Below are positions 6,269 to 41,345 of a stretch of DNA of 64,000 bases, piece by piece. Made by a program: the position numbers and the translations under genes. The notes under the pieces are model-generated. The model did no database searches. It was not told the DNA's origin and saw only the letters and a list, made by a program, of their open reading frames with translations. The stretch covers positions 1 through 64,000 of the forward strand of contig NIVC01000446.1 in NCBI GenBank assembly GCA_002269645.1, read 5' to 3'. The DNA is from Macrostomum lignano. Taxonomy: Eukaryota. The first letter of the stretch is position 1, and each line of letters starts with the position of its first letter.

Positions 6269-6989
6269 AGGTGTGAGCAATTAAAATTAGTTCCTTAAAT
6301 TTCACTCTTCACAATTTTAATCTCATAATTGTAATTGAGCTGGAACAGACAATTAAAAATGAGTTTTTTCCCTTTAAAAAAAGATGCCCCGCCTTTCGGC
6401 ATAGAGTTGAGATCCACTTTGATTGCTGGACTCTGAGCGGCGCGTGAGCAACGGGGAGTCCACGTGTGGACACTTGTCGGGGCTTGATATTAAAATTGAC
6501 ACGAGCCTTATCTACTTGATGAAGAGTATGGCAGTTTGTCCAAAGGTAAGGGCAATTATATAAGCAACAGGAAGAGACACTCGGGGGGAGAAGTTATGCC
6601 ACTTGTGAGCCGTCAGAATTTCAATTTCAAGCTTGCATCATCAACATTTTTTTGAGATTCGTTCGCCTCCTTCCTTCCCGAGAATGAAGAGCCCCGCACG
6701 AGCGGCCTGGGTCAAGGAGACCGAAAGCTAGAACTTGGAGTTTAAAAACTGCAGTGAGTCAATTACATTGATGAGATGACGGTGACTGCTTCGTCCCGTG
6801 GTCCAGCTGCATTGGAACATGGACCTTGCCAATGACAAAGTTCTCCATCTTGGCGTCTAGAGACTTGACTGAGCTTATCTCACCAAGGTGAAGAAGGTCC
6901 TTACCAACAACAGGAACAAAATCAACAGCAACAAAATCAACAGCAAAGTACGCAGCCCCTCATGCAAGTCACAGTGAGAGCAGGGCGCA

Positions 6990-7245
6990 TCAGATGGCGC
7001 GCCGCAGAGTTTGAGAACAGACGAAGTTCACCCCGTTGGCAGTGTCGGGCGCCCCAGCAGCGTCGCACAGCAGGCAGTCCACGTATCGACTGGTTCGGGC
7101 CTGACCCCGCCTGAACGGGCCCTGCAAGGTGAGCAGCAGGACGTCCTTCGCACATTGGGGGGCAGTAGCCCTCGGCCCGGATCACGTGGCCCGCCAGTTG
7201 AAGTCGCCGCCGGCGCAGGATGGTGGACCATGCAGTTTTATTAGT
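6990..7245 (-). mobile_element. 5'-truncated, frameshifted 3' end of an RTE-like non-LTR retrotransposon ORF
   Basis: Translation LRRRRLQLAGHVIR, then after a frameshift KDVLLLTLQGPFRRGQARTSRYVD...TGA. This matches the RRRLxWxGHVxR ... RxRGRP pattern C-terminal of RTE-clade reverse transcriptases. Confidence 0.7.
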
Positions 7246-8335
7246 GTATTCGTGAATTAAAACAAAGGGATTTTTGTGGCAGTGGAGTGGAGTTGAGCTG
7301 CTTACCCTCTCCAAGTTGCAGTTCAGTTTGCAGCCTCCTTGGCTTGAGCACACAAACACCCCGGCCGGGACCTCCTCCAGTGTCGCTTCATCAAAAGATT
7401 TCGCTGAAGAGTTGTCCAGTTTAGCATATATTGTGCCTATAAGAGGATCCGGTCAGAGAAGAAGTGGCATCAGTGGCATGAATTTATTATTGCAATGCGC
7501 TGGCTCCATATGACTTGCTCAATATTTGCTCAGCAAGGAGGGGCCTTCCTAGGCTCCATTAAGCCTCGCTCGCATTGCGCTTCCATCTACCGATTAGCAC
7601 ACACAGCACAAAAATGGAAGCAGCAGATGTTAGCGGGAGCGGCTCTCTTTGACATTTCTTGAGCATTGGGTCGGCTTTGTGTGCTCTCACTTTTTCGAAT
7701 TGAGCTGATAGATTGTATAGAGAGAAATAGAAACTGCCGCTGCAGGTGAGATGAGGAAAATATTCAAACTGAGTAGCAGCATCCATCATCTTCGCGATTC
7801 AATAGGGGCTATGGCTACTAACCAGGCCATGACATTGACTCCCGAGTGGACACAACGTCTTGAGTCCCAGTCAACATGAAAGTGAAGAATGACTTTCTGT
7901 ATAGGGTGAGGACTGGATCGAATTCATGCTGGATTTGTCGTTGCGATTCACAGCCATCAAGGGCAAGTCCCCCCAGGCACAGTGACTGTACATGCCTGAG
8001 GATTACAATTCGATTAGTTGCTATAGTATGCTCGATCTAGAGAAGTGGTCAGCAACCCCCGGCCTTTTGAAGCGTCCTAACCTGATAGCAATCCGGCATA
8101 CTCGAGGTTTAATTCTCTTCTCAACTCTCTTTTCTCATCTCCAGTCCTATCTCCCTTTCCAATCTTTTTTCATCTTCTCTCTCTAATCTCTTCTCCCCTT
8201 CTATTTCTCATCTTCTATCCTCTCATCTCTCTTCTCGTCTCGTCTATTCCCTCTCTTTTCTTCTCACCCCCCCTTGCTTTAAAGAAATCAGAGAGTTTTC
8301 TAGTGCAGATCTTTTTAACCGAATTTTTTTACATT

Positions 8336-12693: not shown

Positions 12694-12920
<227 letters not shown>

Positions 12921-13601
12921 AATATAAATTACACAGAATGAAATTAAACAGGCAAAACATGCTACTCAACAGTAGTGTCTTATGTGGCAGAGTTTTATTC
13001 CACTATAGTGCCAAAAATACCCGGCCTGAAACCGGTACTAATTAAATCCTGACATCAAATCGAAGGCAGCACGCGCGTTAGGCAACAAAAGTTTGAAACA
13101 AAAAATATTTGTGTCCAAAAAAGTTAAGTTAGCAATTAAGGATAGAAAATAAGCAACGAATAATATGTAAGCAACCACAAGTTGAAGTCCTTGTTTAAGA
13201 AGGTACAAAAAAGCACAGCCGAAGTTTCCCGGCTTTGTTTTTTAAGCATCGTAATTAACGAGGTCACTTTACGGTATATAAAAGATACGAGTTAAGTCGA
13301 AATGGGAAATCTGGTAGGTCCTGCTGCAATCGGGGACACTTCAGACTGCGCGTCTTTGTTAAAAATCAAAGAAAGAAGCAACAGCAGAGCATGATCGGAG
13401 ATGCTATAATCATTTTAACTTTAGCCGATACATTCACTTCGATTATAAATATCAAGGACAAAAAGCGGGAGAGGAACCATTTCGGGAAATTAAATTACAC
13501 AGTTGCCAGAGTGTTTTTGGACTTGTTGGATTTAATAGTTCTATAAATTTTAGTCTCATATTCAATACCAAGAAAAATCAGGTTTCTTATCCTCGCTTTT
13601 T

Positions 13602-15548
13602 TTAATTCTCGTCCTCGCCGTCGCCTCCGTCGGCGTCTGCCTCGCCCTCGCCGTCGGCTTCGCCCTCGGCGTCGGCATCGCCGGCATCCTCAGCCTCCTT
13701 AGCGGCCGCTGAATCGTCGGCATCGGCATCAGGCGCATCGCCTGGCGCGCCGGTCGCCTCCAGGTTGGCCATCGCGTCGTTTTCGTCTTCGTCTCGCGGC
13801 TGCGACTGAGTCTCGGAGGCGGCGGCAGCTGATGGATCAACCATGGCGCGCCGGTCCTCCTCGGCCATGCGCTGCTGCTCGATTCGCGTCTCCAGGGCGC
13901 GGTAGGCGGTGTGCCGGTCGCGAATCACCTCGCGCAGCAGGCCGTCGAGTAGGGCGCGGGCGCGCACGGAGGAATCGATGTCGGTGTTGACAGCATCCAC
14001 CAGCCAGGGCAGGAAGCCGCTCTCCACGTCTAGAAGAGGTCAGATCAAGGAGAAAATGTCACTTGTTATCTCCTTAGGTCCACGGAGTCAAAATACGTGA
14101 CGTGAATGTGCCGAGACAACATGACATGCCTGACCGTTACGAGTAGAAACTCCTCATCTAACGTAAAGAACGTTCTTCTGCCAATCCAAATGACCAATTC
14201 CAAGTGACGATGATGGAAAAGTGACTCACCGCGCTCCACGGGATCGTAGAAATATCCGTGCTCTGCCAGGGTGCCGAAAACCGACGGCACGAGGTCGGCC
14301 AAGTAGCTCTGGGCGAAAGCTCGCGCCGCGATTTTGTTCGCCGTCTCGCGCTCTTTCTCTTGCACCTCGCGCTGTTGTTGAACACGGCGCGCCTTCTCCT
14401 CGCGATGGCGCCTGTCCTGCTCTTCCAGTCGCTGTTGTTCGACGAGCTCGGCGTTGCGCAGCTCCTCGAAGGCGCGCTGCTGGGCCCGCAGGTTGGCCAG
14501 CTCCTCTTCGCCGCAGACCTCCAGCAGTGACTGCTCAATGGTTTTGCCAACTAGCACCTCCAGGATGGGCTTGACCTCGATGTCGAAGTTGAACAGCTGC
14601 ATCGAAACAGGGGGAGGGGTAGTGAGGTCAATGGTTGATGATACTCTGGTAGCAAGTCAGAAATTAGGCAATAAATATTGCGCCAAATCTTTACCTCGTT
14701 GTCAAGGATCTGAGTCTCCTTGTCTTCACCGCTTTTAGCTGGGACAAACAGCGGCGACGGGGGCCTGTCAAGGAAGTCGTCAGTTTGGCATTGAACGTCG
14801 GCCTCCTCGATTCGGTCCGCCAGCTCTTCTAGGTACAGCTCCGTCTGGATGTCAATGTGCTTCCTGCCCTCGACGGCTTCTGGCGACTTTGGTCGGAGCT
14901 GCTCGCGTGCGCGCTTCCTAGCCATGGCGCGCCTTCGCATCTCCTGCTGGCGTTGAATTTCCACCGGATCGGGCTGCGCCACTGCAGGCAGCACATGCTG
15001 CGAGTAGGTGTTACCCCGAATGACTCGCCTGTCGTACATCAAGTTGCCGTGATGCGGCACCTCATCCGAGTTCCTGCGCGAGTATAGTGAAAATTGTCTT
15101 GATTATCGAATAAAATAACCTCAATAAAGGAAGCGGTTAGCCGGTTACCAGATAATAAAATGACTATTCGCATAAAAAACGTAACTTAATTTCTTATTTT
15201 TTCGATTATATGCAGTTGCTTTAGTTTTTTGGCGTCAAATGTTGCAAAAGCAGAGTAAATACGAGCGTAGTATATCAGTTGCAATACTTTCCCAAGAACA
15301 AAAACTGTCTGCATTCAGCGGATTAATTCTAGCTATTAATTTTTGAAGCATCAAACCTTAGATTTTACTAGAACTCGCTATGGTTTACAGTTGAAAAAAA
15401 ATTAATTAGTAAAGTCAAGCATTCGATGGTTGACTCACTGCTGTGCAAACTGATCTCGGTATTTTCGTCGGTTAGGAACAGCTCTGGGCTGACTCGAAAA
15501 GGTGTATGTATTGCCCTCATTGGGCTGCTGAGCAAGCGCCGTTGCCAT
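13602..15548 (-). CDS. RSPH3: Radial spoke head protein 3; 4 exons: 15548-15439, 15073-14695, 14596-14230, 14029-13602
   Basis: Motifs TYTFSSQPRA, HGNLMYDRRVIRGNTY, GRKHIDIQTELYLEEL, DRPPSPLFVPAKSG, LFNFDIEVKPILEVLVGKTIEQSLLEV. GT-AG junctions checked for phase (2,0,1); acidic C-tail. Confidence 0.95.
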
Positions 15549-16265
15549 TTGAAAAAATATAAGTTGTAATATCTGAATAAAGAATTAGTTCGCTGCGACG
15601 AGGAGCACACTAATCTCTAGCAATAAAACTGTACGTATTTATTCAAGTTGAAATTTGCATTAACTATGGTGCTGAGATAAATCTAAATATAAGATTAAAG
15701 TTTTGCTTAATTTTTTATGTGTTAAAACCTAAAAAAGCAAATTAAAAAAAGATTTAAAATCTTGCTACAATATATTTTGAACATCGCCGGAATATTTGTT
15801 GTAAATATTAATAAACTTTCAGCACTAATTCAAGAAGCGAACGAAGCTTAGCGACTATAACAAAGCGAAAACAGCACGATTGAGTCAAATCGGTTTATCA
15901 TGAATCACGTGTCATTTGTTTATGTTTCCTGGCAGAGCTACAGCTACTGCTACAGGCCCAACTGGAATGACAATAAGCTATTAATTCATCATAATTTGAT
16001 GATAATTCTTCATTATTTGCTTTCGTCTTTAGATTGGCAGATTCTATTTTAATTTTTTATCTCAGACTGTGAGACTCAGTCTTATTTCATCATGGACGTG
16101 ACGCTTGATAAAGACGATTAGAAAAAAGTTTTTTTCGACTTTTAGACGTATTACCCTAAATACTATATACAAACACTGCAAAATTATGAATAGGGGCCTA
16201 TGAATCAACAATTTATTAGTTATAGGCCAAGGCCCTAGGCCCTAAAGTTTACAGACAGACTATTA

Positions 16266-16357
16266 CTCTTAGCATGTGCCATCCACCATGCCTAACTATT
16301 GAAAACATTTTAATGCAGGCGCCATTATATTGTTGTTGGCATGGCACATGCTAAGAG
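16266..16357. other. Perfect 17-bp inverted repeat (CTCTTAGCATGTGCCAT / ATGGCACATGCTAAGAG) with a 58-nt spacer; small foldback element
   Basis: Arms at 16266-16282 and 16341-16357. Confidence 0.75.
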
Positions 16358-16381
16358 AGAGTAGCAGGCCCATTCCTATAT

Positions 16382-17067
16382 GAATTCCAGTTGTTTCGCC
16401 CCCAAACTGTTTCAGCCATAGACATTTCGCCCCTAGACCATTTCGCCCATAGTCTGTTTTGTCCATAAACCAGTTTGGCTATGGACCGTTTCGCCTCCAA
16501 TTTAGGCATGGGTATTAATGTACTATTATGTATTAACTAGAGATATAGCTGTACATGTATCTTTATTTTCTTTTTTTCAATGCTAATTTTTAGTTTTAAT
16601 GTTCAACAAAATATGATCTGAATTGTTGCCAAAACAATTGTGTTATTGCATTATTGCAATTTTGTTTATTACGATTGTGAATTATTACAAGTTTTTTAAG
16701 TCATTCCTTTGAAAAGTTATAAGGCTAGGTATTAGGCCAGAAATATTTGTACTAGAGCGGTATAGACATACAAACCTTAGAGATTTAGTATATTTGGATT
16801 GTTGGTGTTTTAGCCCCTGGAGTGGGGGTGGCTACTATTGAACCTTGCTTATAATAAATCATATCATTGGTTGTCAGTGCTTTTGACACTTATGTCTCAT
16901 CTCGCATATTCTCAGCTCATGACTTTGTTCATTTCAACCCTGGTCCAAATTAGAGGCGAAATAGTCCATGGCCGAAATAGTTTGTGGGCAAAACAGTATA
17001 TGGGCAAAATGGTCTAGGGGTGAAATGTCCATGGCAGAAACAGTTTATGGACAAAATGACCGGTTAC
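16382..17067. mobile_element. MULE/Mutator-like MITE with ~120-bp internally repetitive TIRs and a 9(-10)-bp target-site duplication
   Basis: TIRs about 16385-16505 and 16945-17065, built from TTTCGCCC/GGACA subrepeats. TSD TTCCTATAT at 16373-16381 and 17068-17076. The two TIRs differ mostly by transitions. Confidence 0.8.
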
Positions 17068-19299
17068 TTCCTATATGTATTATAATTTAGCTATAAAAGG
17101 TTATATTGCTATTATTGACACAGTATTGTCAGGAAAGCTGCCTTTTATTACTTTCAAATTAAAGAATATTCCCATCTCTAATTTTAAACCTTAGCCTTAG
17201 TGTTAGTGTTAGGCCTCAGTACCCAATATTAAGGAACATGGTATATAGGCATATGCTTTAGGCTTAAAATATTATTTAGAAACAAAAACTTTTTGGCCCA
17301 ATGCTTAAAATGCCAATTCTCAAAACTCAAACTCAAATATGCCCTAATCATTAGATTTTTTATGCTTTGAAATAGTCTCATATTCTATTAAAAGTTATTT
17401 AAATATATTTTAAAAGTTAATTAATTTAATTAAGTAATTAATTTAAAAATAAAAAAAAATGAAAATGTAAATCATATGTAAGTCACTATTTGACAGAATA
17501 GTAGTCGCATGACTGCTCTCAGCCAATAGCAATTTACATGTTTATGTTGCCAATAGAAATGGCCAAGTGATTCCCAAGGTTGCGCATGTATATTTTATTT
17601 TATTGCATTAGATAATTGATGCATAGCTAAAGCATCTGGGCATGGTACGCAAGCCTAAAAGTGGCTAGCTAGTGCATGGTTGCCATGCCATCTAACATAA
17701 ATAGTACCAGCTTATGCATTATTACATTGATATTATAAAGCTTGGCTACAGACTTCAAATCAGCCTTAGGTATAATAGTAATTAGTGTTCTAGGCCTCCT
17801 AGCCATTTGACAATCATTAGATAGGCTAAGAAGTTTATGAAAGCATAAAAATAATTTAACACAATTAAGTTAACGATTGCCACTAAAATAAATACCTTGT
17901 CCTTATAAATAGTTAGCCTATTACAGACTACTCAATATTTGTCCTTATATATTTTATTTTCATAATGAGTTTAAACTAACTAAAGCAAGTAGATAGATAG
18001 AGTTTAGGCTTGATTTATATGTTTATAGCTTAGCATTTTTCATTGGCTCATAGTATTACTCATACTATAATTAATGCAATATATGAAAGGTGTTTCAAAA
18101 GAAACAAATGAGAATATAACTTCTTTGCTTTCAAAAGGATAGATTTGTGGTCAAATGTAATTGGAAAATAGTTATAAAAATTATACAATATATAAAAGAT
18201 AATAAAATTAGTCTTTTTTAGTTACCATGTAAATAATAACATTACTTTTTATACAGTACCATATAAATAACAAGTGCCTTAATTCACAAGTCAAATTTGC
18301 CTATTAACAAGTTTACTTTTTGACTAAAAAACTAGGTAAGCTTATTGTTAATATCTTATAATATGGTAATAAATATTATTTAAATCACATTGCAAATTAT
18401 ATATATGAAACCTAAAATTGGATACAAAACAAATATAAATCTATCTAACCTTGCTTGCTTGCTTTATCTTGCCTTTCTAGTCCTATTTTCTTGCCTTGTT
18501 TAGTGCTTATAAGCTATACCACCTTTAGTCAAAAAAGTAACATAGCTTATATTAAAGTATAAGTTAAGTAATCTCTACAGTGTTAAAACCTAATATAGTT
18601 TTGTGCTTTCTAATGCTCTGATTAAAGCTGAGCTAAAACAAATATTTGGAATATTTATTTTTGAACTAATGTAATCAAATATTAAATTTAAATTGTAATT
18701 GAAAAATTAATAATCTAAATACCAAATAGTCATTTTAATATAAAGACAAAGATTTAGAACAAGTCAAGTTAAGTATTAATATAGTTCATAATGTTGTTTA
18801 TATAGTTTTTAAGACAAATAAAAGGAAAAATTATGCTGCATAGGAATAAAGGAAATAAAGACTAAGAAGTTTATATTTAAAGAGTTTAGAATATTAGAAG
18901 CCTTGGGCATACATGTCTAATATCTGGCAATGGCCAACTTGGCCAATTAAACTTGGTGGCAAAAGGTATAGCTAAGATAAATTGCAAAAAAGCTAACCTA
19001 AAAAAATTGACAAAAGGGGAAGACAAAATAGGTAAAAAAGAAAGAAAAAATAGGAAGAAAAAGAAAAAATGAAAGGAAAGAAAAAAAACAAGACAATATT
19101 GCAGCTAAAGGCAACTAAGGTATAGCTAAAGATAGCTAAATTCAAGTGAGTGCTAAAGTCTATTGTTAAAAAGGGGGTAAATTTGCTAACAATGTAAATT
19201 TATGTGAATGGTAAATCACAGGATTCTTTTTTCTGACTCATTTTTATGATTGCAGACACAGAAACTTTTTTATATTTCATGAACAATGAAATTAGACTT

Positions 19300-20022
19300 A
19301 CCTTGCAAATGGTCTCCGCCAAGATGGTTGTTCCAATTGATTGGCACAATTGATGAAGCTATTAGATATTTTGGCACATCCAAAATTGTAGCCAAAGACT
19401 AGAATTGGGTTGGTTATACACAAAGACTGATATTAGAGCACAGGGTGCTTTTTCTAAACAAAACCAAATCACACAATCTAAAGGAATTTGCAATGTTGAT
19501 GCAGTCAGTGGTTGTTAATGTTGCAGTTAGCACCATCCATGGCACCAATGGCATGCTGTCACGGAGGCCTCTGAGCTTCAGGTAGGCCAGCCTAAAGTCA
19601 TTGTCCTATTTGTTTAAGCAGTGTGCCTCATCTAGGATGATGCAGACAAGCTAGCGCAGCTTGACAAGGTGGGCAATGAAGGCTCGGGTCTCAGCTAACA
19701 ATTCTGCCTTCTCTAGTATGCAGTATACCAGTGTATAGGCTGAGGCAAAACTCAGATCTGCACTTGCCACTAATATGCTGTAGGCCTTAATACTCTTCGG
19801 CAGATTCCACAGCTGATCCTCAATCAGGCTAAGAAGAGGTGAGATAACTAGCATTACCCCAAGCATTAGCATAGCCAGGAAGTGGTAGCAGAGGCTCTTG
19901 CTGCCACTAGTGGGTAACACTACAAAAATATATGATGGAGTATTGATACCAATCAGAATTATATCCTCCTGCAATTTATCTTGAAAATTGTTATGGCCAG
20001 ACAGGCTTAAGGCAGCTTGCAT
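19300..20022 (-). pseudogene. Degenerate RecQ-family (SF2) helicase frame with in-frame stops; possibly a relic of a helicase-encoding DNA transposon
   Basis: One frame reads VLPTSGSKSLCY (motif I), LVISPLLSLIEDQ (Ia), VYCILEK (for YxTPE), *LVCIILDEAHCLNK*DNDFRLAY (II, for DEAHCxSxWGHDFRPxY) and VLTATL (III). TAG at 19653-19651 plus further TAG/TAA downstream. Confidence 0.85.
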
Positions 20023-21281
20023 TATGAGACTTTAAAAATATTCCAAAAGCTCAGATAAAAAGATCACGGACCTAAATTTGGAATATTAACAAACTAGAAT
20101 TTTTAATTTTTTAAATCACTTATATATGGGAAAAAGTGTCACAAGAGTAATGTCTGGGTTTTTAGTACATCCAATAGATTACCACCCATAAAATGGGAAT
20201 TGCCCCTAACTTCATTGTACATTCAACTTTTAACCCTACAAAATTTGTGGGGAACTCGTATGTTTACTTCTTGCTAAATGGCAAATTTTCTATTGCCTAT
20301 ATTTTTTAGCATTGCTTAGCAAGTAATATTTTTATGCTTTATCCATTTTATAGCATTTCTGTAAAGACAATTTGTGCTTAATGCTCTTAGAGCTTTCTAT
20401 ATATACTGTCTTTCTATATATATTTTTTTCTAAGAATATTAACCTTTGGCTATTGAAAATGTTATTTTTTGCTGCCATGCTTGAATATTAGATTGTGGGT
20501 TGTTTTGAACATATTTCATGCAGATTTTGCACTAAATTATAGAATAATGTAATTGTTCTGAGTTCTGAATACAAACAAACCAAGTCTTTATCTCCTAGGA
20601 AACACATTTCTAAAAAAGTACCTACAACATAATAAGTTATAAGAAATTATCTAGATTAATCAGGATTTCCGGGACATTGGCTGCAGCAAAATACTGTATT
20701 CTTAGCTGGAATTTCAGGTTTTAAAGAGCACATTTTGCATCGTTTGCTTGGGCAAGCCTGGGCTTCTATTGCTGGGAGTCTCATTGGTGAATGAGTTGGA
20801 CGGTTAGCCTGCATAGGGGTTTGAACCTGAGTCGGTAGCCAAGCGCATCCCAGTCCTAAGTCGCAGATCAGCGTCTTGATGCTATTTTCTAGGAAAGTTA
20901 AAAATTTGGCTGTCCCACCACATTTCTTGTATAGTGTCCAGGAGTTTTGTACAAGTGTGAGAATCTAGTGAAACGCAACTTTCTGGAACCATTTATCTTT
21001 TATTTCCGTTCAGTCTCAATACCAATGCAATTAATCCTGGATGAAAGTTTTTAGAAATATACACTGTCAATAACAATAGAGAGATTCTAGAGGAGTTGCT
21101 CACTTGGGTTTTTGTGCCCAAATGATGCAGATGCACAGTAGAGGTTGGACAAGATCAAAATTTTAGCGGATATTTAAGTGAGATTGGAATTTTGATAAAA
21201 TAAACATTTTAATCATTTTTCAGTTATGCAACAGCTCAATAGTATTGAATACAGATGGTGCTTGACAAAGTAACTTAATTA

Positions 21282-21833
21282 ATGTTAACTTTCATGAATT
21301 GTCTCCGCACCATTGGCCGACTGGTGTCGGCCACAGCTGCCAGTGGCTTTTCCAGTGCGCCACGTTTTGCATCAGTTGTGAATTGTCGCGTCAATCAATG
21401 TCAGCGCAACCGATGGCTGTCAACCGTAAATATGTCTGGTAATAATTCTGCTTCGGCTACTTCTAGCAGCAAACAGAAGTACCAGCCAGATTTTGTTCCA
21501 ATATATTTTATACTACGCGACGGGTCAAAAGTTCGCGTCGATTGTCGAGTTGGCGACAACCTGCTAGACATAATTATCGATCAGAATGTCGATATTGACG
21601 GATTCGGCGCCTGCGGCGGCACTCTCAGCTGTTCCACCTGTCATCTCATATTTGACAAAGCTAATTACGACTCGCTGCCTAATAAGGTGACGGAAGAGGA
21701 GCAGGATATGCTGGACATGGCCTACGAATTGAGCGACACATCCAGACTGGGCTGTCAGATTGTTGTCACTCCGGACATGCAGGATTGGGTTATTAAAGTG
21801 CCCAATGATGTAGCCGATGCTAGGATTCTGTGA
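21282..21833 (+). CDS. FDX1: Mitochondrial adrenodoxin-type [2Fe-2S] ferredoxin, single exon, with an N-terminal transit-like peptide
   Basis: DGFGACGGTLSCSTCHLIF, EEEQDMLDMAY and SRLGCQ motifs. The GTLxCSTCHLIF pattern is of FDX1 type rather than FDX2. Confidence 0.92.
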   Translation: MLTFMNCLRTIGRLVSATAASGFSSAPRFASVVNCRVNQCQRNRWLSTVNMSGNNSASATSSSKQKYQPDFVPIYFILRDGSKVRVDCRVGDNLLDIIIDQNVDIDGFGACGGTLSCSTCHLIFDKANYDSLPNKVTEEEQDMLDMAYELSDTSRLGCQIVVTPDMQDWVIKVPNDVADARIL

Positions 21834-22474
21834 TTTGTGATAATAGTTGAATAAGGCATCGCTTGCATTGGCTCCTGGTCCATTTTCTTTCATTATTAAA
21901 TGTATTGAGTTTATTCATTTTGCTCTGGCTTGCAACTTTGTTGACTGCAGAGCTAGCTAGCTCATCCCATCCGCCATTTTTTAGTTTTCTTGATGACGCT
22001 GATTAAAGACGCTTAATTTTGCACCTTAACTGAAAACAAAAATATAAATTAATTCAATAATTCACTGCTTGTTTTGTTGTCTATTTAGTGGCCCGCCTAC
22101 ATTAATTAGATAGAGCTGTACTCTCTTGCTAGTGAACAGGTTTAACAGAAAAAATATGACCTTCAAAGCTGAATTAGATAACGCAAGTTTTAGTTGAAAG
22201 TTTTGATAAAAAGATCAATTACTTGCTCCTAGATTAAAGTGCAACTGTAGCCTAAACTAAAGTCCCTATAGAAATGTACCTTTCAGTGTAAGATTGTTTA
22301 AAAGTTTTCACGTGATTTTAATTATTAATAACTGAGAATTTGTCTGTCTTCAACATTTCAGCTCTGTTTTTCAACGATCAATTCAGCTGTCCTATTTATA
22401 CCCTTGCAAACAACTAAATATAAACTTGTATTTAGAATAGAATTAAATTTTAGTTGGTTTAATACTGGTTGTCA

Positions 22475-23854
22475 ATGGGACCGACTATTGTTGGCGCGAC
22501 CGCGTCTCCGGCAACCACTCCGGGTGGTGGATCGAGGCGTCAACATCAGCAGCAGCAGCAGCAGAATCGCAGTTCCATTGGCGGCTCCTCCAGCAGGTCT
22601 TCGCTAGGCGCTTCTCCTGCACCTTCGTCGGCCTCTTCTGGCGGACAAGCCAGCCAGCGCAAGCAGGAGAGTGGTCTAATCTGTCGGGTTCGCTATTGCA
22701 ACAGCTTGCCAGACATTCCATTTGATCCGAAATTCTTAGCCTATCCGTTTGAGACCGGTCGATTTGTAAAGTACAATACGACCTCGTTAGAGAAAGAATA
22801 TAAGCACGAACTGCTTACTGAGCTGGACTTAGGCATCGACATTGACTTAGTGAATCCGGACACTTATCAAACATCTTTAGTTGCTAAGCCAGATCCCGAA
22901 GATGAGGCTCTGGTTGCCGACGAGACCGGACCTGGCGGTTTACACCAGCGTGCGTCCCGGCACGACAGGATGAAAGCCTCCTGGCTGCGCAAGACTGAGT
23001 ATATCTCTAATGAGGCTAATCGACAGAACCAGGTGTTTAGCGATAAGATTGAATCGAAGATCAATCTTAAGAACAAAGTATTTAGCGAGGCCGAAGATAT
23101 TTACAAGACCAAGGAGAAACAGATTGAAGCTATTGAGAAAACATTCGAAGCCACCAAGCGACCAGTAGAGGAGCATTATAGCCGTCGTGGAGTCCACGCC
23201 GTCCAGGTGATGCCTCTGCTGCCAGACTTTCAACTCTGGCAGCACCCGTGCGCACAGGTGATCTTCGACACCGATCCGACTCCGAAGGATCAGTCCGGTT
23301 TATCCGACGATGTAACCCAGGCAATGATTCGAGGCATGGTCGACGAGTCTGGCGATCAGTTCGTAGCTTACTTCTTGCCAACTAGGGAGACCAGAGCTAA
23401 GCGGAAGCGCGATCAGGAGGCTGGCCTACCCTACGTAGCCGAGGATGTCTACGAGTACGAACTCAACAGAGAGTACAATTGGAACGTTAAGAATAAGAGT
23501 ATGAAAGGCTACGACGAGAATTACTTCTTTGTATTTAGAGAAGGCGGCGTCTATTATAACGAATTAGAGACCCGAGTTCGATTGAGTAAGCGTAGAAAAA
23601 TCGGCATGCCCGGCGGTGCGCCGACCACGAAAACTAAACTGGTTGTCCGACATCGCGATTTCAATCCGGCCGAATTGGCCGACAGAACGGCCAGATTGGC
23701 CGCGTTGGAGCCAGCCGAGGAGGTTGAGGAAGACGATGATGATGAAGAAGAAGAAGAGGGAGAGGCTGCGAACGATGATGAAGAAGAGGAGGAGGAGCTT
23801 ATGGAAGAGGGGGCCGATGAAGAGGAAGAGGATATACCGCCTGCTGACGAGTAA
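22475..23854 (+). CDS. PAF1: RNA polymerase II-associated factor 1, single exon (first ATG at 22475; the track starts at an upstream TTG)
   Basis: MGPTI start; CRVRYCNSLPDIPFDPKF, SWLRKTEYIS, QHPCAQVIFDTDP, QAMIRGMVDESGDQFVAYFLP, YYNELETRVRLSKRR; acidic tail. Confidence 0.96.
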   Translation: MGPTIVGATASPATTPGGGSRRQHQQQQQQNRSSIGGSSSRSSLGASPAPSSASSGGQASQRKQESGLICRVRYCNSLPDIPFDPKFLAYPFETGRFVKYNTTSLEKEYKHELLTELDLGIDIDLVNPDTYQTSLVAKPDPEDEALVADETGPGGLHQRASRHDRMKASWLRKTEYISNEANRQNQVFSDKIESKINLKNKVFSEAEDIYKTKEKQIEAIEKTFEATKRPVEEHYSRRGVHAVQVMPLLPDFQLWQHPCAQVIFDTDPTPKDQSGLSDDVTQAMIRGMVDESGDQFVAYFLPTRETRAKRKRDQEAGLPYVAEDVYEYELNREYNWNVKNKSMKGYDENYFFVFREGGVYYNELETRVRLSKRRKIGMPGGAPTTKTKLVVRHRDFNPAELADRTARLAALEPAEEVEEDDDDEEEEEGEAANDDEEEEEELMEEGADEEEEDIPPADE

Positions 23855-23933
23855 CGAGAATTATCCTTTTTTGTTTCCAATAACACGCCTTGTTGTTTTT
23901 TAATTGGAGCATCAGTTTTAATATGAACCACAT

Positions 23934-24376
23934 ACTAGAATAATTAGATAGGCCACTCAGCACATTTGCGTGTAAGCTACTTTCAGTTCAGTAGCAAGTT
24001 AACAGAAACATTGTAATGTATTTTAAAGTCAAGGCTCGTTTATTGGCTCTTACCCTCCTTCCAGCTTAAACCCTCCAACCGCGTCTTTCCACACTACCCC
24101 CCCGCGCGCCCCAATTTTTATTGCCTTTATCCGAATTCCAGCGTAAAGCGGCCATGTACATTTCAGTGGGATGGCTAATGTACATTATGGCTGAACCAAT
24201 TAGCAAGCTGTTTACGCCTGCAAGCTTGTGTGGGCTCCTAAAACTATCAAACTTTTCAATTCAGCTGCCTTTATTTTTATAAAATAGCTTATGTATTCCT
24301 CTTTGCTACTGAACTGAAAGTAGAAAGCTGTTTTACTAAGTATATACGCCTGAGTGGCCCATCTAGTTATTCTAGT
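23934..24376. mobile_element. Unclassified foldback MITE with bipartite TIRs; no TSD evident
   Basis: ACTAGAATAAYTAGATRGGCCACTCAG at both ends in inverted orientation, plus a second inverted block CTACTTTCAGTTCAGTAGCAA (about 23977 and 24303). Confidence 0.75.
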
Positions 24377-25129
24377 CTCAGTGATCTAAACCAAGTTTGC
24401 TATTCTAGAAAATTTACTCGATCTAGCTTCTGTTTATTAATTAATATTGTCAGCATGTGCCGATTAAGGTTTTTAGTACCTGAGCCCCTCATAATTCAGA
24501 TGGGAATTGTATTACTCTTATCAGTTGGGATTCTAACCCCCTCCCCTAGACTTAATGGAATTCTTTTGTAAGTAAGAGTGTAGAATAAGCCAGTATATCT
24601 ACGTATGTGAGGATTTGTAAGGTAAATTGTGAGATTTAGGGATGTTATTTAAACCCTGTCTCATGTCATTCATTATTTCTTTCGTTTATGTTTAATTGCA
24701 TGTACATATAACATACCGGTTTGCATCCAGCAATTAATGTGAAGTAATACTACTGCATGTACAAAGTAGTACAAGTAGTACATCAGCTTAGCGTTTTTAT
24801 AGACGCTTTTTTGTCCTAAAAAGTTGATAGTAAACAATTGATAAAATGTATAAAGTACCTTTTGCCAGTTGGAGCAAAATGTTTATTGAGTTTTTTATTT
24901 GTATAATACTAAAAAGTCAATTTAGTTTACTTAGCGAAATAGTCAAATAAGAGCTATCTAATTCTAGCGGACTAGCCAATTAATAGAAATTAATATCATA
25001 TTTCGCTAAGCAAGCTTAGCTCCCTCTGGACCTTAGATACCTGATTCAAGCGGTTAGTGACCTGATTAGTGATTGCAACGGGTGCATGACCATAACTATC
25101 TGAGCTACTGTAGGGGTGTACCACTATGA

Positions 25130-25765
25130 CGGACTGAATGACTGTAGGGGTGTATGACCATGACTGTAGGGATGTATGATCATGACCATCTAAAGGACTG
25201 TATGAGTGTATGACCATGACTGTAGGGATGTATGATCATGACCATCGAAAGGACTGTAGGGGTGTATGACCATGACTGTAGGGATGTATGACCATGGCTA
25301 TCTGAAGGACTGTAGGGATGTATGACCATGACCATCGAAAGGACTGTAGGGGTGTATGACCATGGCTATCTGAAGGACTGTAGGGATGTATGACCATGGC
25401 TATCTGAAGGACTGTAGGGATGTATGACCATGGCTATCTGAAGGACTGTAGGGATGTATGACCATGGCTATCTGAAGGACTGTAGGGATGTATGACCATG
25501 GCTATCTGAAGGACTGTAGGGATGTATGACCATGGCTATCTGAAGGACTGTAGGGATGTATGACCATGGCTATCTGAAGGACTGTAGGGATGTATGACCA
25601 TGGCTATCTGAAGGACTGTAGGGATGTATGACCATGGCTATCTGAAGGACTGTAGGGATGTATAACGATGGCTATCTGAAGGACTGTAGGGGTGTATGAC
25701 CATGACTGTAGGGATGTATGACCATGGCTATCTGAAGGACTGTAGGGATGTATGACCATGACCAG
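25130..25765. repeat. 34-bp minisatellite (GAAGGACTGTAGGGATGTATGACCATGGCTATCT)n
   Basis: Tandem units directly upstream of SHPRH, with shorter variants at the edges. Confidence 0.93.
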
Positions 25766-25889
25766 TCAGTTTTTCATAACTTCTAAAGTCAATGAATAAA
25801 ACTATATTTACATTTTGCAGATCTAAATGGATAAACTAATGGGGGTTAATGGCTAGACAAGACGATTCGATCGAGTTTGCAAACAGACC

Positions 25890-28800
25890 ATGAAGAGAAA
25901 GCAGTCGCAACCGGTCAGATTGGTGCTAGCGGAACAGTCCAGTCGGTCTTGGCAGTGCAGCTGGCTTGCTAGTTCCACTTCCATTACGGATGAAGTTACC
26001 GATTCACAACCGGTTGTTAAGCGTCAAAAACTTATTGGCAGAAAGGGTGCGAATGATCCGTTAAGCCTTATAAAGAAGTCGGCTAATAGTACTGCAAAAT
26101 TGCATTGGTTGCCGACAGTTGAAGATGGTGATCATCAAGCTGCTCTAGCCACCGTGTTAGTTGATGAGATTTTGCCCGCGTCTAATTCTCCGCTGACTAG
26201 AGCGGAGCTGATGCCGATGTTAATAAAGAATTCAACAGCTGATACAGTTCAGGATGAGCTGGTAGACTCCAGTTTAGAGGCCTGTCTGTTGTTTTCTTGC
26301 GAGCAGGTGAGGCCCTTTTTTGTTTGAATTCTGTGTGGGTTTTTATAACTTTTGGTGCCCATTTGGGTGACATTGTTTCACAACCAGCCAGCACTGAGGG
26401 CACATACAAGTGCTCATGTACATGTTTTCAGAGGCTCGTTTGTTTTGGGTCTTTGCACTTTGCTGTGCAGCCTTTTAGATTTTCTTTGTTTTGAATTGAA
26501 ATAACCAGTTTCTTGTCATAGCCTAGTGTTTAAAGCGTCGGAGTCACGACTATAAGGTCTGGGGTTCAAATCTCTGCTCACTCGGAACAATTTGTGTCCT
26601 TGAGCAAGACACTTCACTCTGCATTGCTTCAGTTCACCCAGCTGTAAAATGGGTGCCAGCATTAGCTGGGGTAATTGAGAGTGTGTGGCGACCCCCCCAG
26701 TCCTTGGACTGAACAGCCGTACGCAGCCTTCAGATGCGCCGCGCAATAGCTGCGGCTAAGCTGTCGGTTACACATCTGGCTCAATTGGGGCATGTGTAAT
26801 AAATTATTGATTATTTTATTTTTCGAATTTTAGCGTATTATCCCTATATTTCTACTATCAGTAGAGTATCAAAGAAAAGTTCAGTATATTAGATTATGCT
26901 TCTGTCAGTCTTTTATATAGCTCATTAACTTCTCTAGTGCAACTGCATTTACAACTGCAATGCTCAACATTCCCCATTGTTCCTCAGGTATTTCTACACG
27001 TCAGACTGTCTTCCCGTTCCCATAGCAACCAAAGCAGTCGCGAAGCTGTCTACCTGCTATCGGATCAATCAGGCAAACTTGGCTGTTTGAACTGTCCCAG
27101 TAAGCTCTGTTTGACAGCTCGACAGCAGAATCTACTGGATTGTCTAACCGACTTAGCTTCGTCTTGTAAGACTTCGCTAAGCAAGCCGTTGATTATCGTT
27201 GCCTGTCTCCGAGTTGAGCGCCTGTTGGCAGCTTCGTCGTCTAGTCGGCATCGTCTTGGCGATGATCCAGCCGATTGGCCAACTAGTAGAGGCGTCTGGT
27301 GCCGACGCCTAGCTCATCTGGTGCAGCTCGACTGGGGCTTGACTGACAGGTCCGTGCAGCCCGTGCCCGCTTCGTCTGGTCGGGAGAATCTCATGCTGTT
27401 TTTTGATCAGGTTTGTGTGGCTATTGATCAGTAATGCTACTTCAGTATGTTCTTATAGATCTACATTCCTGTGCTCTGTTGCCGCAACAGTAGTTAATTA
27501 GAATCCCAACTCATTGATTAAAAAACTCAAACGGAATCTCCATCTCAGGGATCGGAATCCCCATCTCAGGGATCAGATTACCCTATCTCATGGATCAGAA
27601 TCCCCATCTCAGGGATCAGATTGCCCCATCTCATTTATCAGAATCCCCATCTCATGGATCAGAATCTCCATCTCAGGGATCAGATTACCCCATCTCATGG
27701 ATCAGAATCCCCATCTCATGGATCAGAATCTCCATCTCAGGGATCAGATTACCCAACTAAGGGATTAAAATGCAGAGCTACTCAACCAGTTAACCATGTG
27801 CCTGTCTGTCCAGGTAATGGACAATAATTTATGTCGCAGCGGCAGCTCCGAGGCGCTAATCAGCTGGTACCATACTTAGTCAGAACTAGTTGCTATGGAC
27901 AAGCTCGGCATGCACTCCCAACTGCGTCCCTATCAACGCATGGCGCTAGCCTGGGCAGCCAGGCGCGAACTGGAGCCCCAGCTGGCTACAGGAATTGTTG
28001 GCGGACTGCTGCGAGAAGCCTACAGAGAAATTCAACTGCCAACCGCCAAAGCCGCCTACGCCACTAAAGATCCTACTGTTATGAGTAGTAGTACTAGCGC
28101 TACCGCTGTGTGTTATTCACCCTATCATAATCATTTTGTGCTGCGACTGCCCGCCTGGGAGAAGCATTCCGCTGAAGAATTGGGCGCTAATTCGATAGCT
28201 AGGTGATTTTTTTATTACTGTTATCAGTGATGAGATTCTGGTTGTGTCGTCTCAATGGATGAGATTCTTATCCTGTGGTCTCATGGGTGAGATTCTTATC
28301 CTGTGGTCTCATGGGTGAGATTCTTATCCTGTGGTCTCATGGTGAGATTCTTATCCTGTGGTCTCATGGGTGAGATTCTTATCCTGTGGTCTCATGGGTG
28401 AGATTCTTATCCTGTGGTCTCATGGGTGAGATTCTTATCCTGTGGTCTCATGGGTGAGATTCTTATCCTGTGGTCTCATGGGTGAGATTCTTATCCTGTG
28501 GTCGCATGGGTGAGATTTTTATCCTGTGGTCTCATGGGTGAGATTTTTATCCTGTGGTCTCATGGGTGAGATTCTTATCCTGTGGTCTCATGCAGTGGCG
28601 CAACCAGGGGGGGGGGGGGCGGGGGACCGAAAAAAATCAAAGGGGGGCCAAGCGAATTTTCGCCAAAAACAGAGCCACCCCTCCGCCGCCCCCCCCCCTC
28701 CCGGGACTTTACCCTCAGAATCCGCCCCCCCCCCTTGAAAAATTTCTGGTTGCGCTACTGGTCTCATGGGTGAGATTTTTATCCTGTGGTCTCATGGGTG

Positions 28801-31800
28801 AGATTCTCATTCTGTGGTCGCATTGGTGAGATTCTTATCCTGTGGTCGCATGGGTGAGATTCTCATCCTGTGGTTTCATGGGTCAAATTCTAGATCTGTC
28901 ATCTCAGGCTTGAAATTCTATAAACAGCTGGCACTCGTAGAGTTGAATTCCATTCCGTAAATAGTCTTCATATCGGTGTTTTAATATTTTCACGCAGAGG
29001 AGGCATCCTAGCCGACGAGATGGGCCTCGGCAAGACTGTGGAGATGATCGCCCTGATCTTGGCCATCCGCCGCCGTCGCCGCCTGCGAACGAAGACTGTA
29101 CTAATATTATTGACAGAGAGGACGCTGAGCAGCTTGAGTCGAAGAGTCCGATTGGCCGACAACTCTATTGTCTGTGCAACAACGCAGAAGTGATCGGTAT
29201 GGATTATGGTCGACGTCAACGCACGGATCCGATTATTCTACTAGACTATGTCGTTTGCGACTCTTGCGGCGACGTGCAGCATCGACGCTGCGTTGGTTTG
29301 GCTGCGTCTTCAAATTTGCGACGTCAAAGCGAACGAGGCTACCTGTGCCCAATGTGCCTGCTGCGTCAGCCGCCAGTGCCCGGTCGGGCTACGCTGTTTG
29401 TTGTGCCGCCTATACTGCTGGAACAGGTGATTTATGATTCTCAACTTTAGGGTAAAATTGAAGTTTTAGTTACTTCAGGTGACGTTTTAGCCTAGAGGGT
29501 GAGATTTTGAAGGTCAAAGCTAGAGGGTGAGATTTTGAAGGTCAAAGCTAGAGAGTGAGATTTTGAAGGTCATAGCTAGAAGTTGAGATTTCAAAGCTCA
29601 AAGCTAGAGGGTGAGATTTTGAAGGTCATAGCTAGAGGGTGAGATTTTAAAGGTCAAAGCTAGAGGGTGAGATTTTAAAGGTCATAGCTAGAGGGTGAGA
29701 TTTTAAAGGTCAAAGCTAGAGGATGATATTTTAAAGGTCATAGCTAGAGGGTGAGATTTTAAAGGTCATAGCTAGAGGGTGAGATTTTGAAGGTCATAGC
29801 TAGAGGGTGAGATTTTGAAGGTCATAGCTAGAGGGTGAGATTTTGAAGGTCATAGCTAGAGGTTGAAGTTGAAGATTGAAGATTGAAGTTGAGATTTTAA
29901 AGGTCAAAGCTAGAGGGTGAGATTTTAAAGGTCATAACTAGCGGTTGATATTTTGAAGATATTAACTAGAGGGTTAGATTTTGAAGGCCAAGGCTAGAAG
30001 TTGAGATTTTAAATGTCAAAGCTAGAGGGTGAGATTTTGAAGGTCATATTCAGAGGTTGAGATTTTGAAGATCTTGCTAGAGGTAGAGATTTTAATAACA
30101 ACTGCCTCGTAGCTTTTTTAAATATGAGACTGAAGAAAATAGATTTGCTGAAGAGTAATATGAGACATTAAAAATTGCTAAAAAAACACACAGCCTTCCC
30201 CTCTCCTCTTCAGGTGAAATTAGAATTTGTCAGACACACGGCTCGCCCAGACTTCAATCTGACAGTGTACTCAGGAATTGAGCACGGCTACGTTCAGCCA
30301 ATGACTTGGCCCAATCAGACGTTGTTGTCACACTACGGCGTGTTGCAACGCGAAAGTCGATTTGTTTTAACTGACGCTAATTGACGAGAAGCATCAACGT
30401 CAGCGCCGGTATAACCGGTCGGCCAGGTATCCCGGCATATTAGTCCGCTCACCTGTGTGCACTGGTGGCGCATTGTGCTGGATGAAGCTCAGACTATCTG
30501 CTCTAGCAACACGCAATTAGCTTGCATGACCAATCGCTTATCAGCTGTCAATCGTTGGTGCGTCACCGGTACACCGGTGCAAACCGGCCTGTCTGATCTG
30601 CACGGCCTGTTCCAGTTCCTTGGCGCACCTGTAGCCCAATGCTCTCGCTGGTTTAAACACCTGTTGCTCTATCCGTATCAGGCTGGCAGCTATCAGCCGC
30701 TGGTGGAGTTCACTGCCAGCCTACTGTGGCGTCAGACTAAATCTCGGGTAGCCGATCAGATTGGCATTCCGCCCCTGACCGAGCGGGTCTATCGGCTCAG
30801 CTTTAGCGGTATCGAGTCACTCTATTATCGGCTAAGGATGGAGAGCGAGAGAAGCGCCTGGCGGAGAACGCTTGATAGGTAGATTGAGTTTTGCATTTGT
30901 TATTGTATTCAAGTGTGTTCGATAGGGCTGTGTGACTCTTTTTATTAGAGGCAGGGGGTTCTGTGCACCCTGGCGCACTTTAAGCGACATGGGCACACAA
31001 CCGGCGAGAGGGATTGCTGCCCATTCCGCCGACTCCCCTGAGCAGGCATACAAGCGCGCGGAAACGTATGCAGGCACACACTCACACAGGAGTGTACAGC
31101 GGCTTTAACTTTATTTTATCGTTAGGCATGTACACTTCACTGCGCCTTGGGGGGTTGGCTCTCAAGGCCGTTAATTGCACGAGCAGAGCCAAGCTGAGAT
31201 TCCAAATTCAGCCCCAAATCAATGTGACTGCACTTGGAATCGAGCCTGGGTCGCTGGTACACCAGAGCCTGCGCTAGACCGCTGGGCTACGGCACCCCGG
31301 CTGTGTGACTCTCTTCCTCCCTCTGCCTTCCGCTCCCTCCGTTCTTCCTCTCCGCCTATTCCGCCCCTCCGCCTTCCGCCCCCTCCGCCTTCCGCCCCCT
31401 CCGCCTCTTCCGCCCCTATCCGCCTCTTCCGCCCCCTCCGCTTCTTCCTCCCCTGCGTTCTTCCTTCCATCCGCCTCTTCCGCCCCGTCCGCCTCTTCCT
31501 CCCCTGCGTTCTTCCTTCCATCCGCCTCTTCCGCCCCGTCCGCCTCTTCCTCCCTGCGTTCTTCCTTCCATCCGCCTCTTCCGCCCCCTCCGCTTCTTCC
31601 TCCCCTGCGTTCTTCCTTCCATCCGCCTCTTCCGCCCCGTCCGCCTCTTCCTCCCCTGCGTTCTTCCTTCCATCCGCCTCTTCCGCCCCGTCCGCTTCTT
31701 CCTCCCCTGCGTTCTTCCTTCCATCCGCCTCTTCCGCCCCCTCCGCTTCTTCCTCCCCTGCGTTCTTCCTTCCATCCGCCTCTTCCGCCCCGTCCGCCTC

Positions 31801-39573: not shown

Positions 39574-40267
39574 ATGTTGCGCAGTCTACGTTCGGCTGTG
39601 TTTGGCAAATCGAAATCGAACGAATTTGACTCGGGCGGAGGCGGCGCCAGCGGTGGTTCTTCTTTTAGTAGCAGCGCGCCAGGAAATCCTGTTATCAATA
39701 GCAGATTCGATGCGGTCTGTCGGGAATTTCTCGACGCTTGGCAATCGGAGTCCACCGACTCTGCCGACGCGTTGCAAGCTTCGCCTGCTCCCATTGACGA
39801 CGCGGAATTGAAAAGCCTTTGCGAGTCTGTCCAGTCGCACATTCGTCTAGTGGTATTCGTTGACAGTCACCGACTCAGGCGGCACGTGTTCTTCGACTCT
39901 AAAACCTTGGAAAGAATCGTTCCGGACCAGGGGGGTCAGGGTCAGGCGGCAAGCAGCCAGCAGCAGCGGCAGCAACAACAGCAACAGCAGAAGACTCAGA
40001 TATCAAGATCGGCAACAATTCCTGCTAGAATTGATTGGACAGCGTCTGGGCAGCAGTCAAGACAGAAGTTGCAGCGTCAGCAGCAGCAACAGCAGCAGCA
40101 GCAGCAGCAACAACCTCCAAGAAGACGCACTTTGCCACCTTGGACGCCGAATTATCGGCAGAGCAAGCAGGCTAGCGATATATCGCTGCTGAGAGAGCTG
40201 GTAGGCTGCCCACTTGCGCCTGCGTTTCTGTATGTCTGTCTGCCTGTCTGTCTGCCTGTCTGTCTGC

Positions 40268-40298
<31 letters not shown>

Positions 40299-40782
40299 CC
40301 TGTCTGTCTGTCTGTCTGCCTGTCTGCGGGTGTCCGTCTTTCTGTCTGTCTGTCTGTCCGTCTGTGTCTGTCTGTCTGTCTCTGTCTATCTGTCCGTCTG
40401 TTGGTGTCTTGTTTCTTTCTGTCTGTCTGTCTGCCTGTCTGTCTGCGGGTGTCCGTCTGTCTGTCTGTCTGTCTGTCAGTCAGTCTTTCTGTCGATGCCT
40501 GTTTTTATCTGCCTGTCCGTGTCTTTTCTGTCGATGCCTGTTTTTATCTGTCTGTCTGTCTGCCTGTCTGTCTGTCTGCCTGTCTGTCTGCCTGTCTGTG
40601 TCTGCCTGTCTGTCTGTCTGTCCGTCTGTCTGTCTGTCTGTCTGCGGGTGTCCGTCTTTCTGTCTGTCTGTCTGTGTCTGTCTGTCCGTCTGTGTCTGTC
40701 TGTCTGTCTCTGTCTATCTGTCCGTCTGTTGGTGTCTTGTTTCTTTCTGTCTGTCTGTCTGCCTGTCTGTCTGCGGGTGTCC

Positions 40783-40813
<31 letters not shown>

Positions 40814-40864
40814 AGTCTTTCTGTCGATGCCTGTTTTTATCTGCCTGTCTGTCTGCGGGTGTCC

Positions 40865-40907
<43 letters not shown>

Positions 40908-41345
40908 AGTCTTTCTGTCGATGCCTGTTTTTATCTGCCTGTCCGTGTCTTTTCTGTCGATGCCTGTTTTTATCTGCCTGTCCGTGTCTGTATCTGTCTG
41001 TTCTTCTGTCGATCCCGCTGCTTACCTCACGCACCCCATCCCAATGCCCATGCAGGTATTCGGCAACGTGGAACTTAGCCATAAAGCCGCCTGCACCAAG
41101 GTGCACGCCAGCGACAACCCGTTGAAGATTTACCTGACACGCCTGTTCTACCCGACCAGCTCCAACTGCGGCTCCGTCACGACCACCACCTCGGCTTCGA
41201 GTAGCGCGTCCGCCTCTAGCTTTGACCAGCAGCCGCATCAAGCTGCCAATTCTCCCGCTCTCGCACACGTTGGCCAGCTGCCCAGGCCCGTGTCTCTGGC
41301 GCACTTTATCGATCCTTCATCGACAACGCCCAGACCGCTCGGCAT

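Follow-up and report, generated by a model that had tools for sequence, protein, structure and literature searches.

The locus and its three copies

The stretch of DNA described here, which we call the window, comprises 64,000 nucleotides of the free-living flatworm Macrostomum lignano (contig NIVC01000446.1:1-64000, assembly GCA_002269645.1). Our subject is an AT-rich, CpG-depleted island at 16148-20800, a nested transposon or pseudogene relic that was delimited by its CpG positions, observed/expected (o/e) CpG ratios, shuffled sequences, matched windows, and the occurrence of the same borders in other copies of the locus. An earlier interpretation made from the letters of this DNA alone (the sequence-only reading) had regarded the island as hypermutated from C to T in the manner of fungal repeat-induced point mutation (RIP).

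The island fills the spacer between two divergently transcribed genes. To its left lies RSP3 (radial spoke protein 3; 13602-15548, minus strand), and to its right Fer2, an adrenodoxin-like 2Fe-2S ferredoxin (21297-21833, plus strand), both placed by gene calls in L002, a locus (12475-33854 of NIVC01000446.1) that is 100% identical to this part of the window. Farther to the right, the open reading frame (ORF) at 22469-23854 is a PAF1 homologue, 100% identical to M. lignano BOX15_Mlig024082g3. Two further copies of the locus, L001 (NIVC01002314.1) and L003 (NIVC01004599.1), are found in the same assembly and are 95-99% identical to the window. The gene order common to the three copies is RSP3 (minus), island, Fer2, PAF1, and SHPRH, and a segment of at least 17 kb that includes these four genes occurs three times at this level of identity.

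The island has identical borders in three independent contigs (those of the window, L001, and L003) and is therefore no misjoin. Divergence among the copies is uneven: comparison of 12805-29480 with L001 and L003 gave ~0.45% in 12805-16170, ~1.2% in the island, and a several-fold higher value from 20800 rightwards, a pattern suggestive of gene conversion in the recent past or of a triplicated segment with a mosaic history. The window also has a deletion of its own at 17465-17466, where L001 and L003 are each ~165 bp longer; the extra sequence is AT-rich and CpG-free.

CpG deficit of the island

Between 17101 and 20100 we counted 10 CpGs (o/e 0.14), as against 72.1±7.1 in mononucleotide shuffles, the lowest of 2000 shuffles still holding 46. 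There is no CpG at all between 17875 and 19316, whereas shuffles of 17880-19310 contained 23.1±4.1. The adjacent interval 15101-16100 has 33 (o/e 1.16). The CpG counts of the sequence-only reading were exact (10, none in 17880-19310, and "roughly 30" for these 33). Across 16148-20800 just 25 CpGs are left, an o/e of 0.21, or 0.14 when the inserted element at 16382-17067 is left out, and CpG density returns from ~20800 rightwards.

With minisatellites masked, the window yielded 153 non-tandem 500-bp windows, 17 of them in the island and 136 elsewhere. The island windows have a median CpG o/e of 0.15 and a maximum of 0.45, versus a median of 0.84 and a minimum of 0.38 in the others, and the island is the sole non-tandem stretch of the window with a CpG o/e below 0.38. 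Ratios in the neighbouring genes and promoters are ~1.0-1.4 (RSP3, at 1.0-1.4, is not hypermutated), and gene bodies in the window are without CpG depletion. Other low-CpG stretches (9.3-11.4, 25.1-25.8, 37.1-37.7, 46.1-47.2, and 61.3-63.3 kb) were considered as comparable islands and rejected; they are minisatellites with a CpG-free repeat unit.

The products of CpG decay are still present, as a surplus of CpA/TpG: the strand-symmetrised o/e, 1.06 over the whole window, rises to 1.15 in the island and to 1.36 in the helicase remnant described below, values that fall within or exceed the span of AT-rich controls. In contrast, the richness in TA dinucleotides that had been noted for the island dissolves on comparison. 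TpA is common because the DNA is AT-rich, and its o/e of 0.96 lies within the 0.83-1.07 of AT-rich controls, with no enrichment beyond composition.

A separate peculiarity is that GpC is strongly over-represented (o/e 1.5-2.1) in AT-rich DNA, for example in 15101-16100, 17068-19300, and 57501-60500, both in the island and in most controls. Within the island, G is also the 5' neighbour next to which C mutates least (GC 0.9%, TC 3.4%, CC 2.6%, AC 2.3%). Together, the GpC excess and the low mutability of GC may be a genome-wide context effect.

Anatomy of the relic

The right part of the island contains the remnant of a RecQ-family helicase (19405-20049, minus strand), identified by tblastn of 71 homologues and by Pfam PF00270 (E=2e-10). 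It is the N-terminal DEAD/DEAH lobe only, in which motifs I, Ia, II, and III were all found; motif I has the sequence PTSGSKS, and the DEAH of motif II has survived intact. Compared with the 71 RecQ-like proteins, 55 of 94 conserved columns are retained. Helicase_C and the RecQ zinc-binding/RQC region were not found by tblastn of the same homologues, homology stopping at ~19405. There are four in-frame stops, and the remnant is a truncated pseudogene.

Alignment with the 71 homologues upheld the codon readings that had been offered as an internal control for directional decay (T-P as ATA CTA, W as TAG, GGGK as AGT GGC AGC AAG, P as CTG, and T as ATG). It is likewise true that the four in-frame stops are all TAA or TAG, as had been pointed out, although their value as a signal does not hold: TAA and TAG together outnumber TGA ~4:1 in this AT-rich DNA, and so the lack of TGA among four to six stops is not significant.

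The relatives of the remnant are distant. A word-indexed search of 5.8 billion clustered proteins gave best matches of 33-42% identity (37-42% for the nearest relatives), from stramenopiles and metagenomes, and a full HMMER search of 1.84 billion representative proteins, in which the intact 123-aa ORF of the remnant served as query, gave at most 57% identity over 64 aa. Neither of these collections contained a close relative that would give the ancestral DNA. The top HMMER match is P0192, a RecQ protein containing assembly-like internal repeats, the matches P0007 and P0014 lie amid ordinary cellular genes rather than transposons, and viral relatives did not appear in the search. The source of the remnant may have been either a DNA transposon that encodes a helicase (AcademH or KolobokH are candidates) or a copy of a host gene.

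To the left of the helicase remnant is an AT-rich core (17077-19404), with 22-31% GC in 500-bp sub-windows from 17251. Six-frame translations revealed no coding signal in it, and tblastn no extension of the helicase. The core is in turn bordered by a miniature inverted-repeat transposable element (MITE) at 16382-17067, a non-autonomous element with terminal inverted repeats (TIRs) that is present in all three copies and whose CpGs are partly decayed (o/e 0.48). Its left arm (16387-16523, plus strand) is built of 16-nt sub-repeats (TTTCGCCC...) and its right arm occupies 16927-17063 (minus strand); the arms are 137 nt long and 78% complementary. The 9-bp target-site duplication (TSD) TTCCTATAT is identical on the left (16373-16381) and on the right (17068-17076), and no ORF with homology was found inside the element. 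The sequence-only reading was correct about the MITE, including the TIRs and the perfect TSD of 9 bp. It had added that the arms differ mainly by CpA-type and CpG-type transitions; such transitions do occur (10 and 7, respectively), but "mainly" fails, as 17 transversions equal them. We give this comparison little weight in either direction, as it has no polarity and the arms were possibly imperfect from birth.

Just left of the MITE, at 16266-16357, lies a perfect inverted repeat of 17 nt (CTCTTAGCATGTGCCAT / ATGGCACATGCTAAGAG), its arms separated by 58 nt. Self-BLAST found no other copies of the island inside the window, the sole self-match being the MITE's own TIRs, and tRNA, SINE (short interspersed element), and Rfam signals were not found, although 20800-20890 looks tRNA-like.

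Two further mobile elements distinguish the copies of the locus from one another. The helicase remnant of L001, and of L001 only, is interrupted by a 278-bp hAT-like MITE (L001 7016-7293) with 14-nt TIRs (CATACATGCGCAAC) and an 8-bp TSD, ACTAATAT; in the window, the corresponding target site ACTAATAT is empty (19769-19776). Similarly, L003 alone contains an intact, Mos1-like mariner (L003 10873-12165) with a 355-aa transposase ORF (Pfam Transposase_1 and HTH_48); its terminal repeats are perfect, and its target duplication is TA. The site near 22180 in the window is empty, and the mariner was therefore recently active.

Mutation spectrum in the three copies

To polarise changes, a base seen in one copy and differing from the two others was taken as derived. 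The counts below cover 14.6 kb of aligned non-tandem columns (island 4577 bp, flanks 9985 bp), with changes per site added up across the three branches. Should the root fall on one of the branches, part of the changes would be polarised wrongly, which would dilute a directional bias and not create one.

C>T changes (read on either strand) make up 33 of 57 changes in the island and 63 of 199 in the flanks. At CpG the rate is 6/50 (12%) in the island versus 12/1013 (1.2%) in the flanks (odds ratio, OR, 11; p=1e-4), or 1/423 if the left flank is taken alone. No such difference is seen at CpA (14/578, 2.4%, versus 27/1275, 2.1%; OR 1.15, p=0.73). The rates in island and flanks are 11/546 (2.0%) and 7/1338 (0.5%) at CpT, 2/308 (0.65%) and 17/916 (1.9%) at CpC, and 11/3095 (0.36%) and 46/5443 (0.85%) for T>C, with 13 and 90 transversions. 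Inside the island, C>T at CpG exceeds that at CpA with an OR of 5.5 (p=0.003). The claim of C>T-biased decay in an animal genome has thus stood, and the decay is still ongoing. A second, independent control, 38.7-61.3 kb of the window against its paralogue L007 (10.4 kb), shows CpG transitions at 1.6-1.9%, not above those at CpA or CpT.

Island C>T changes divide 17/16 between the strands, and all island changes divide 24/19/14 among the copies. This strand symmetry and the spread over three copies indicate steady accumulation and no burst; the three-copy alignment contained no mutation runs confined to one copy or one strand.

Older changes can be read from the helicase remnant. Relative to the consensus of the 71 homologues it has 35 single-step codon changes at conserved columns, and 20 of the 33 that can be assigned are C>T/G>A: 10 at ancestral CpG, 6 at CpA, 3 at CpC, and 1 at CpT. 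The remainder are 1 T>C and 12 transversions, with 2 ambiguous. The codons cited in the sequence-only reading belong to this set. The proportions of its non-CpG changes (CpA 6, CpC 3, CpT 1) match those of the flanks (27:17:7).

Elements of different residence time point the same way. Those present in a single copy of the locus have a CpG o/e of 0.79 (the hAT-like MITE of L001), 0.62 (the mariner of L003), and 0.86 (a 6-kb TIR element in the window), versus 0.48 in the old MITE common to all copies and 0.14 in its host relic. From this gradient we conclude that mobile DNA arrives near-normal in CpG and loses CpGs with a longer stay.

Explaining the C>T bias

The observation itself is real and statistically solid: CpG has been lost, the loss is limited to the relic, it continues in all three copies, and it bears no RIP signature. 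The best explanation, which we hold to be probable, is that a CpG-methylated old transposon or pseudogene relic is decaying by deamination of 5-methylcytosine (5mC). Relic CpGs, past and remaining, pass to TpG/CpA ~10 times faster than the CpGs of neighbouring genes and promoters. Most likely, DNMT1/DNMT3 would methylate the CpGs of the relic, in germ-line or stem-cell-line DNA, and would leave the flanking promoters and genes unmethylated. Spontaneous deamination would convert 5mC to thymine; the remaining low G+C would come from long neutral AT-biased decay. The marks by which 5mC decay is recognised were found in the island, namely a strong CpG deficit with a TpG/CpA surplus and a C>T rate at CpG that stands above the rates at CpA, CpT, and CpC and that of T>C. 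We infer both the causal role of methylation and the targeting of the relic on account of its transposon origin. According to three reviews that cite Wasik et al. 2015 (PMC11292947, PMC9246332, and PMC10658182), DNMT1 and DNMT3 have been retained in M. lignano, in contrast to planarians and parasitic flatworms, and 5mC is present at a low level.

Several points weigh against this explanation. The same reviews call the 5mC level of M. lignano only "low", and its genomic pattern is called unknown (2022 review; PMC11292947, PMC9246332, PMC10658182). In most invertebrates 5mC lies on gene bodies and not on intergenic transposons, so that the targeting of transposons would be unusual (PMC11292947). 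One locus supplied all the counts, which are low (six CpG events), absolute rates are hard to compare since divergence is uneven along the locus, and the island has a relative excess of non-CpG C>T beyond what CpG methylation alone explains.

This last excess, modest at roughly 3-fold, is what could make the locus more than a routine case. Non-CpG C>T changes stand to other changes as 27:24 in the island and 51:136 in the flanks (OR 3.0, p=0.0012), and as 9:2 in the helicase segment alone (p=4e-4). With the left flank as reference, where transversion divergence is equally low, the comparison is 27/1432 versus 2/1093 (p=3e-5). Per site, C>T stands to T>C at a ratio of 5.3 in the island, as against 1.6-1.8 in the flanks (1.6 where these are AT-rich), and pairwise transitions and transversions number 32:9 in the island versus 18:22 in other AT-rich DNA. 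Neutral AT-biased decay set beside flanks under constraint, deamination that proceeds more easily in AT-rich DNA, or a component of non-CpG methylation could each be responsible.

RIP senses duplicated DNA and deaminates CpA (and CpG) on both copies, as in Neurospora. It removes CpA/TpG and makes TpA, depends on a RID-type DNA methyltransferase and a premeiotic stage, and hits duplications above a few hundred bp. The dominance of C>T/G>A in the helicase remnant, with its six CpA>TpA changes including W>TAG, is what such a defence would produce, and the AT-richest core, 17751-18750, comes nearest to the RIP line, with a substrate index of 1.05-1.10 and a slightly positive composite index (0.11-0.16). 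However, when the thresholds generally known from the RIP literature are applied (TpA/ApT >0.89, (CpA+TpG)/(ApC+GpT) <1.03, and composite >0), none of the 17 island windows passes all three, and 9 of the 136 other windows do so by chance. Island medians, compared with those of 37 other AT-rich windows, are 0.98 and 0.98 for TpA/ApT, 1.49 (range 1.05-2.06) and 1.19 for the substrate index, and -0.43 and -0.19 for the composite: the island is no more RIP-like than AT-rich DNA at large, the very outcome that the sequence-only reading had named as refuting it. CpA/TpG is undepleted, and the supposed targeting of CpA is not borne out, the island rate being that of the flanks. In addition, the flanks are triplicated over at least 17 kb and yet keep a CpG o/e near 1 without C>T excess, so that duplication as such is not the trigger, and runs of mutations limited to one copy or one strand are missing from the alignment. 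The RIP-like interpretation is not supported, and we attach next to no credence to a true defence of this kind. Much the same applies to an import of sequence that was already CpG-poor, whether transferred horizontally from a virus or from a donor with methylation or RIP, or present through contamination or misjoining. The best matches of the helicase remnant are admittedly from non-animal eukaryotes (stramenopiles and metagenomes), but they are ordinary cellular RecQ genes at 33-42% identity, too distant to point to a donor, and no viral relative was found. The loss of CpG goes on in place, and the junctions recur in three contigs, which answers both the suggestion of an old, horizontally acquired RIP-ed sequence, for which there is no fungal or horizontal sign, and the proviso that the island might be a contaminant or misjoin. 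We judge import very improbable.

AID/APOBEC-type editing of retroelement cDNA or of genomic DNA could also leave a C>T load, and the low mutability of C after G would be in keeping with it. The 5' context is weak, however, the changes are strand-symmetric, dispersed over three copies, and accumulating after insertion, and no retroelement features were found. In a survey of AID/APOBEC-like deaminases (PMC5889660) the one flatworm match is doubtful and identical to a host sequence, and we would be surprised if editing were the source. A less remote alternative, though still an unlikely one, is that the relic carries non-CpG (CpA/CpT) methylation along with CpG methylation, or undergoes other DNMT-dependent deamination, as a duplication-independent animal analogue of RIP or of methylation induced premeiotically (MIP); C>T decay would then rise in several contexts. 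A non-CpG-methylation defence was among the possibilities named in the sequence-only reading. Each of the contrasts described for the non-CpG excess favours it, and the order CpG >> CpA ≈ CpT > CpC in the island is similar to the non-CpG preference known for DNMT3 enzymes. Against it, the absolute CpA rate is equal in island and flanks, CpA/TpG is undepleted, and CHG and CHH contexts (H being A, C, or T) do not differ significantly. The flanks, mostly coding or promoter DNA, are possibly just constrained. Moreover, other AT-rich DNA of the window has CpA at 1.8%, CpT at 1.9%, and CpC at 0.6%, and so the order CpA ≈ CpT > CpC is not specific to the island and may belong to AT-rich context. The wider proposition that M. 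lignano methylates dead transposon DNA rather than gene bodies, and that this methylation, or the methyltransferases as such, raises C>T at CpG and also at CpA/CpT and slowly erodes relics into AT-rich, CpG-free islands, is one that we advance as speculative and doubtful. The locus is best filed under a known kind, the CpG decay of transposon relics, this one being probably methylated.

Comparison with known systems

The closest parallels to CpG decay by 5mC deamination are old Alu and L1 elements of vertebrates and the methylated transposons of sponges and some molluscs, which share with the island a CpG deficit, a TpG/CpA surplus, and ~10-fold CpG transitions. As in such decay generally, the deficit is limited to repeat DNA, promoters keep their CpGs, and the depletion deepens with insertion age. 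What differs is the host, a free-living flatworm reported to have low 5mC, and the gene bodies, which in the window are not CpG-depleted.

With RIP in Neurospora crassa the island has in common the directional C:G>T:A decay of a dead mobile remnant, TAG/TAA stops, and an AT-rich island beside normal DNA; it differs in that CpG is preferred over CpA, the indices are negative, duplicated flanks are spared, and changes accumulate slowly in each copy. Basidiomycete TpCpG hypermutation and MIP are alike in a CpG-dominated C>T load on transposons that is plausibly linked to methylation. Here, in contrast, the host is an animal, and no dependence on duplication was seen. APOBEC footprints in vertebrate long terminal repeat (LTR) retrotransposons resemble the island in a C>T/G>A excess within a mobile-element remnant. 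Such footprints are strand-asymmetric, clustered, set at retrotransposition, and found in 5' TC/CC contexts, whereas the island is symmetric, dispersed, post-insertion, and CpG-centred.

As the exciting RIP reading fails and one locus only is concerned, the finding is a modest one. It is nevertheless a sequence-level sign, in a flatworm that keeps DNMT1 and DNMT3, of CpG hypermutability on an intergenic transposon relic with genes and promoters spared, and this relic-centred pattern departs from the usual gene-body pattern of invertebrates. The partly triplicated genome of M. lignano allows a cheap three-copy measurement of context-specific mutation spectra. Carried out genome-wide, such an analysis could tell if flatworm genomes are shaped by methylation that targets transposons, be it purely CpG or partly non-CpG.

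Other features of the window

The 6-kb TIR element mentioned above is 6022 bp long (54523-60544), has 45-nt inverted repeats (98% complementary), is absent from the paralogue L007, and is probably a young DNA transposon. It contains arrays of a ~20-nt unit in higher-order repeats (54920-55729) and of a 386-bp unit (57192-58437). In total, more than 20 minisatellite and microsatellite arrays, with periods of 4-386 bp, occur in the window, and several of them explain its other CpG-free kilobases. Some arrays lie inside long ORFs, such as 39574-42030, in which TCTG repeats are read as SVCL....

The ORF at 6940-7452 (minus strand) has a C-terminal part that by eye resembles the tail of a LINE (long interspersed element) reverse transcriptase (…RRRRLQLAGHVIRAE…), without a Pfam match, and CpG o/e is moderately low (0.53-0.74) in the surrounding 1-8 kb. 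Finally, 60S acidic ribosomal protein P2 is encoded by two tandem genes (48237-48569 and 49549-49881; Pfam Ribosomal_60s) whose products are one residue apart, and L007 likewise has two.

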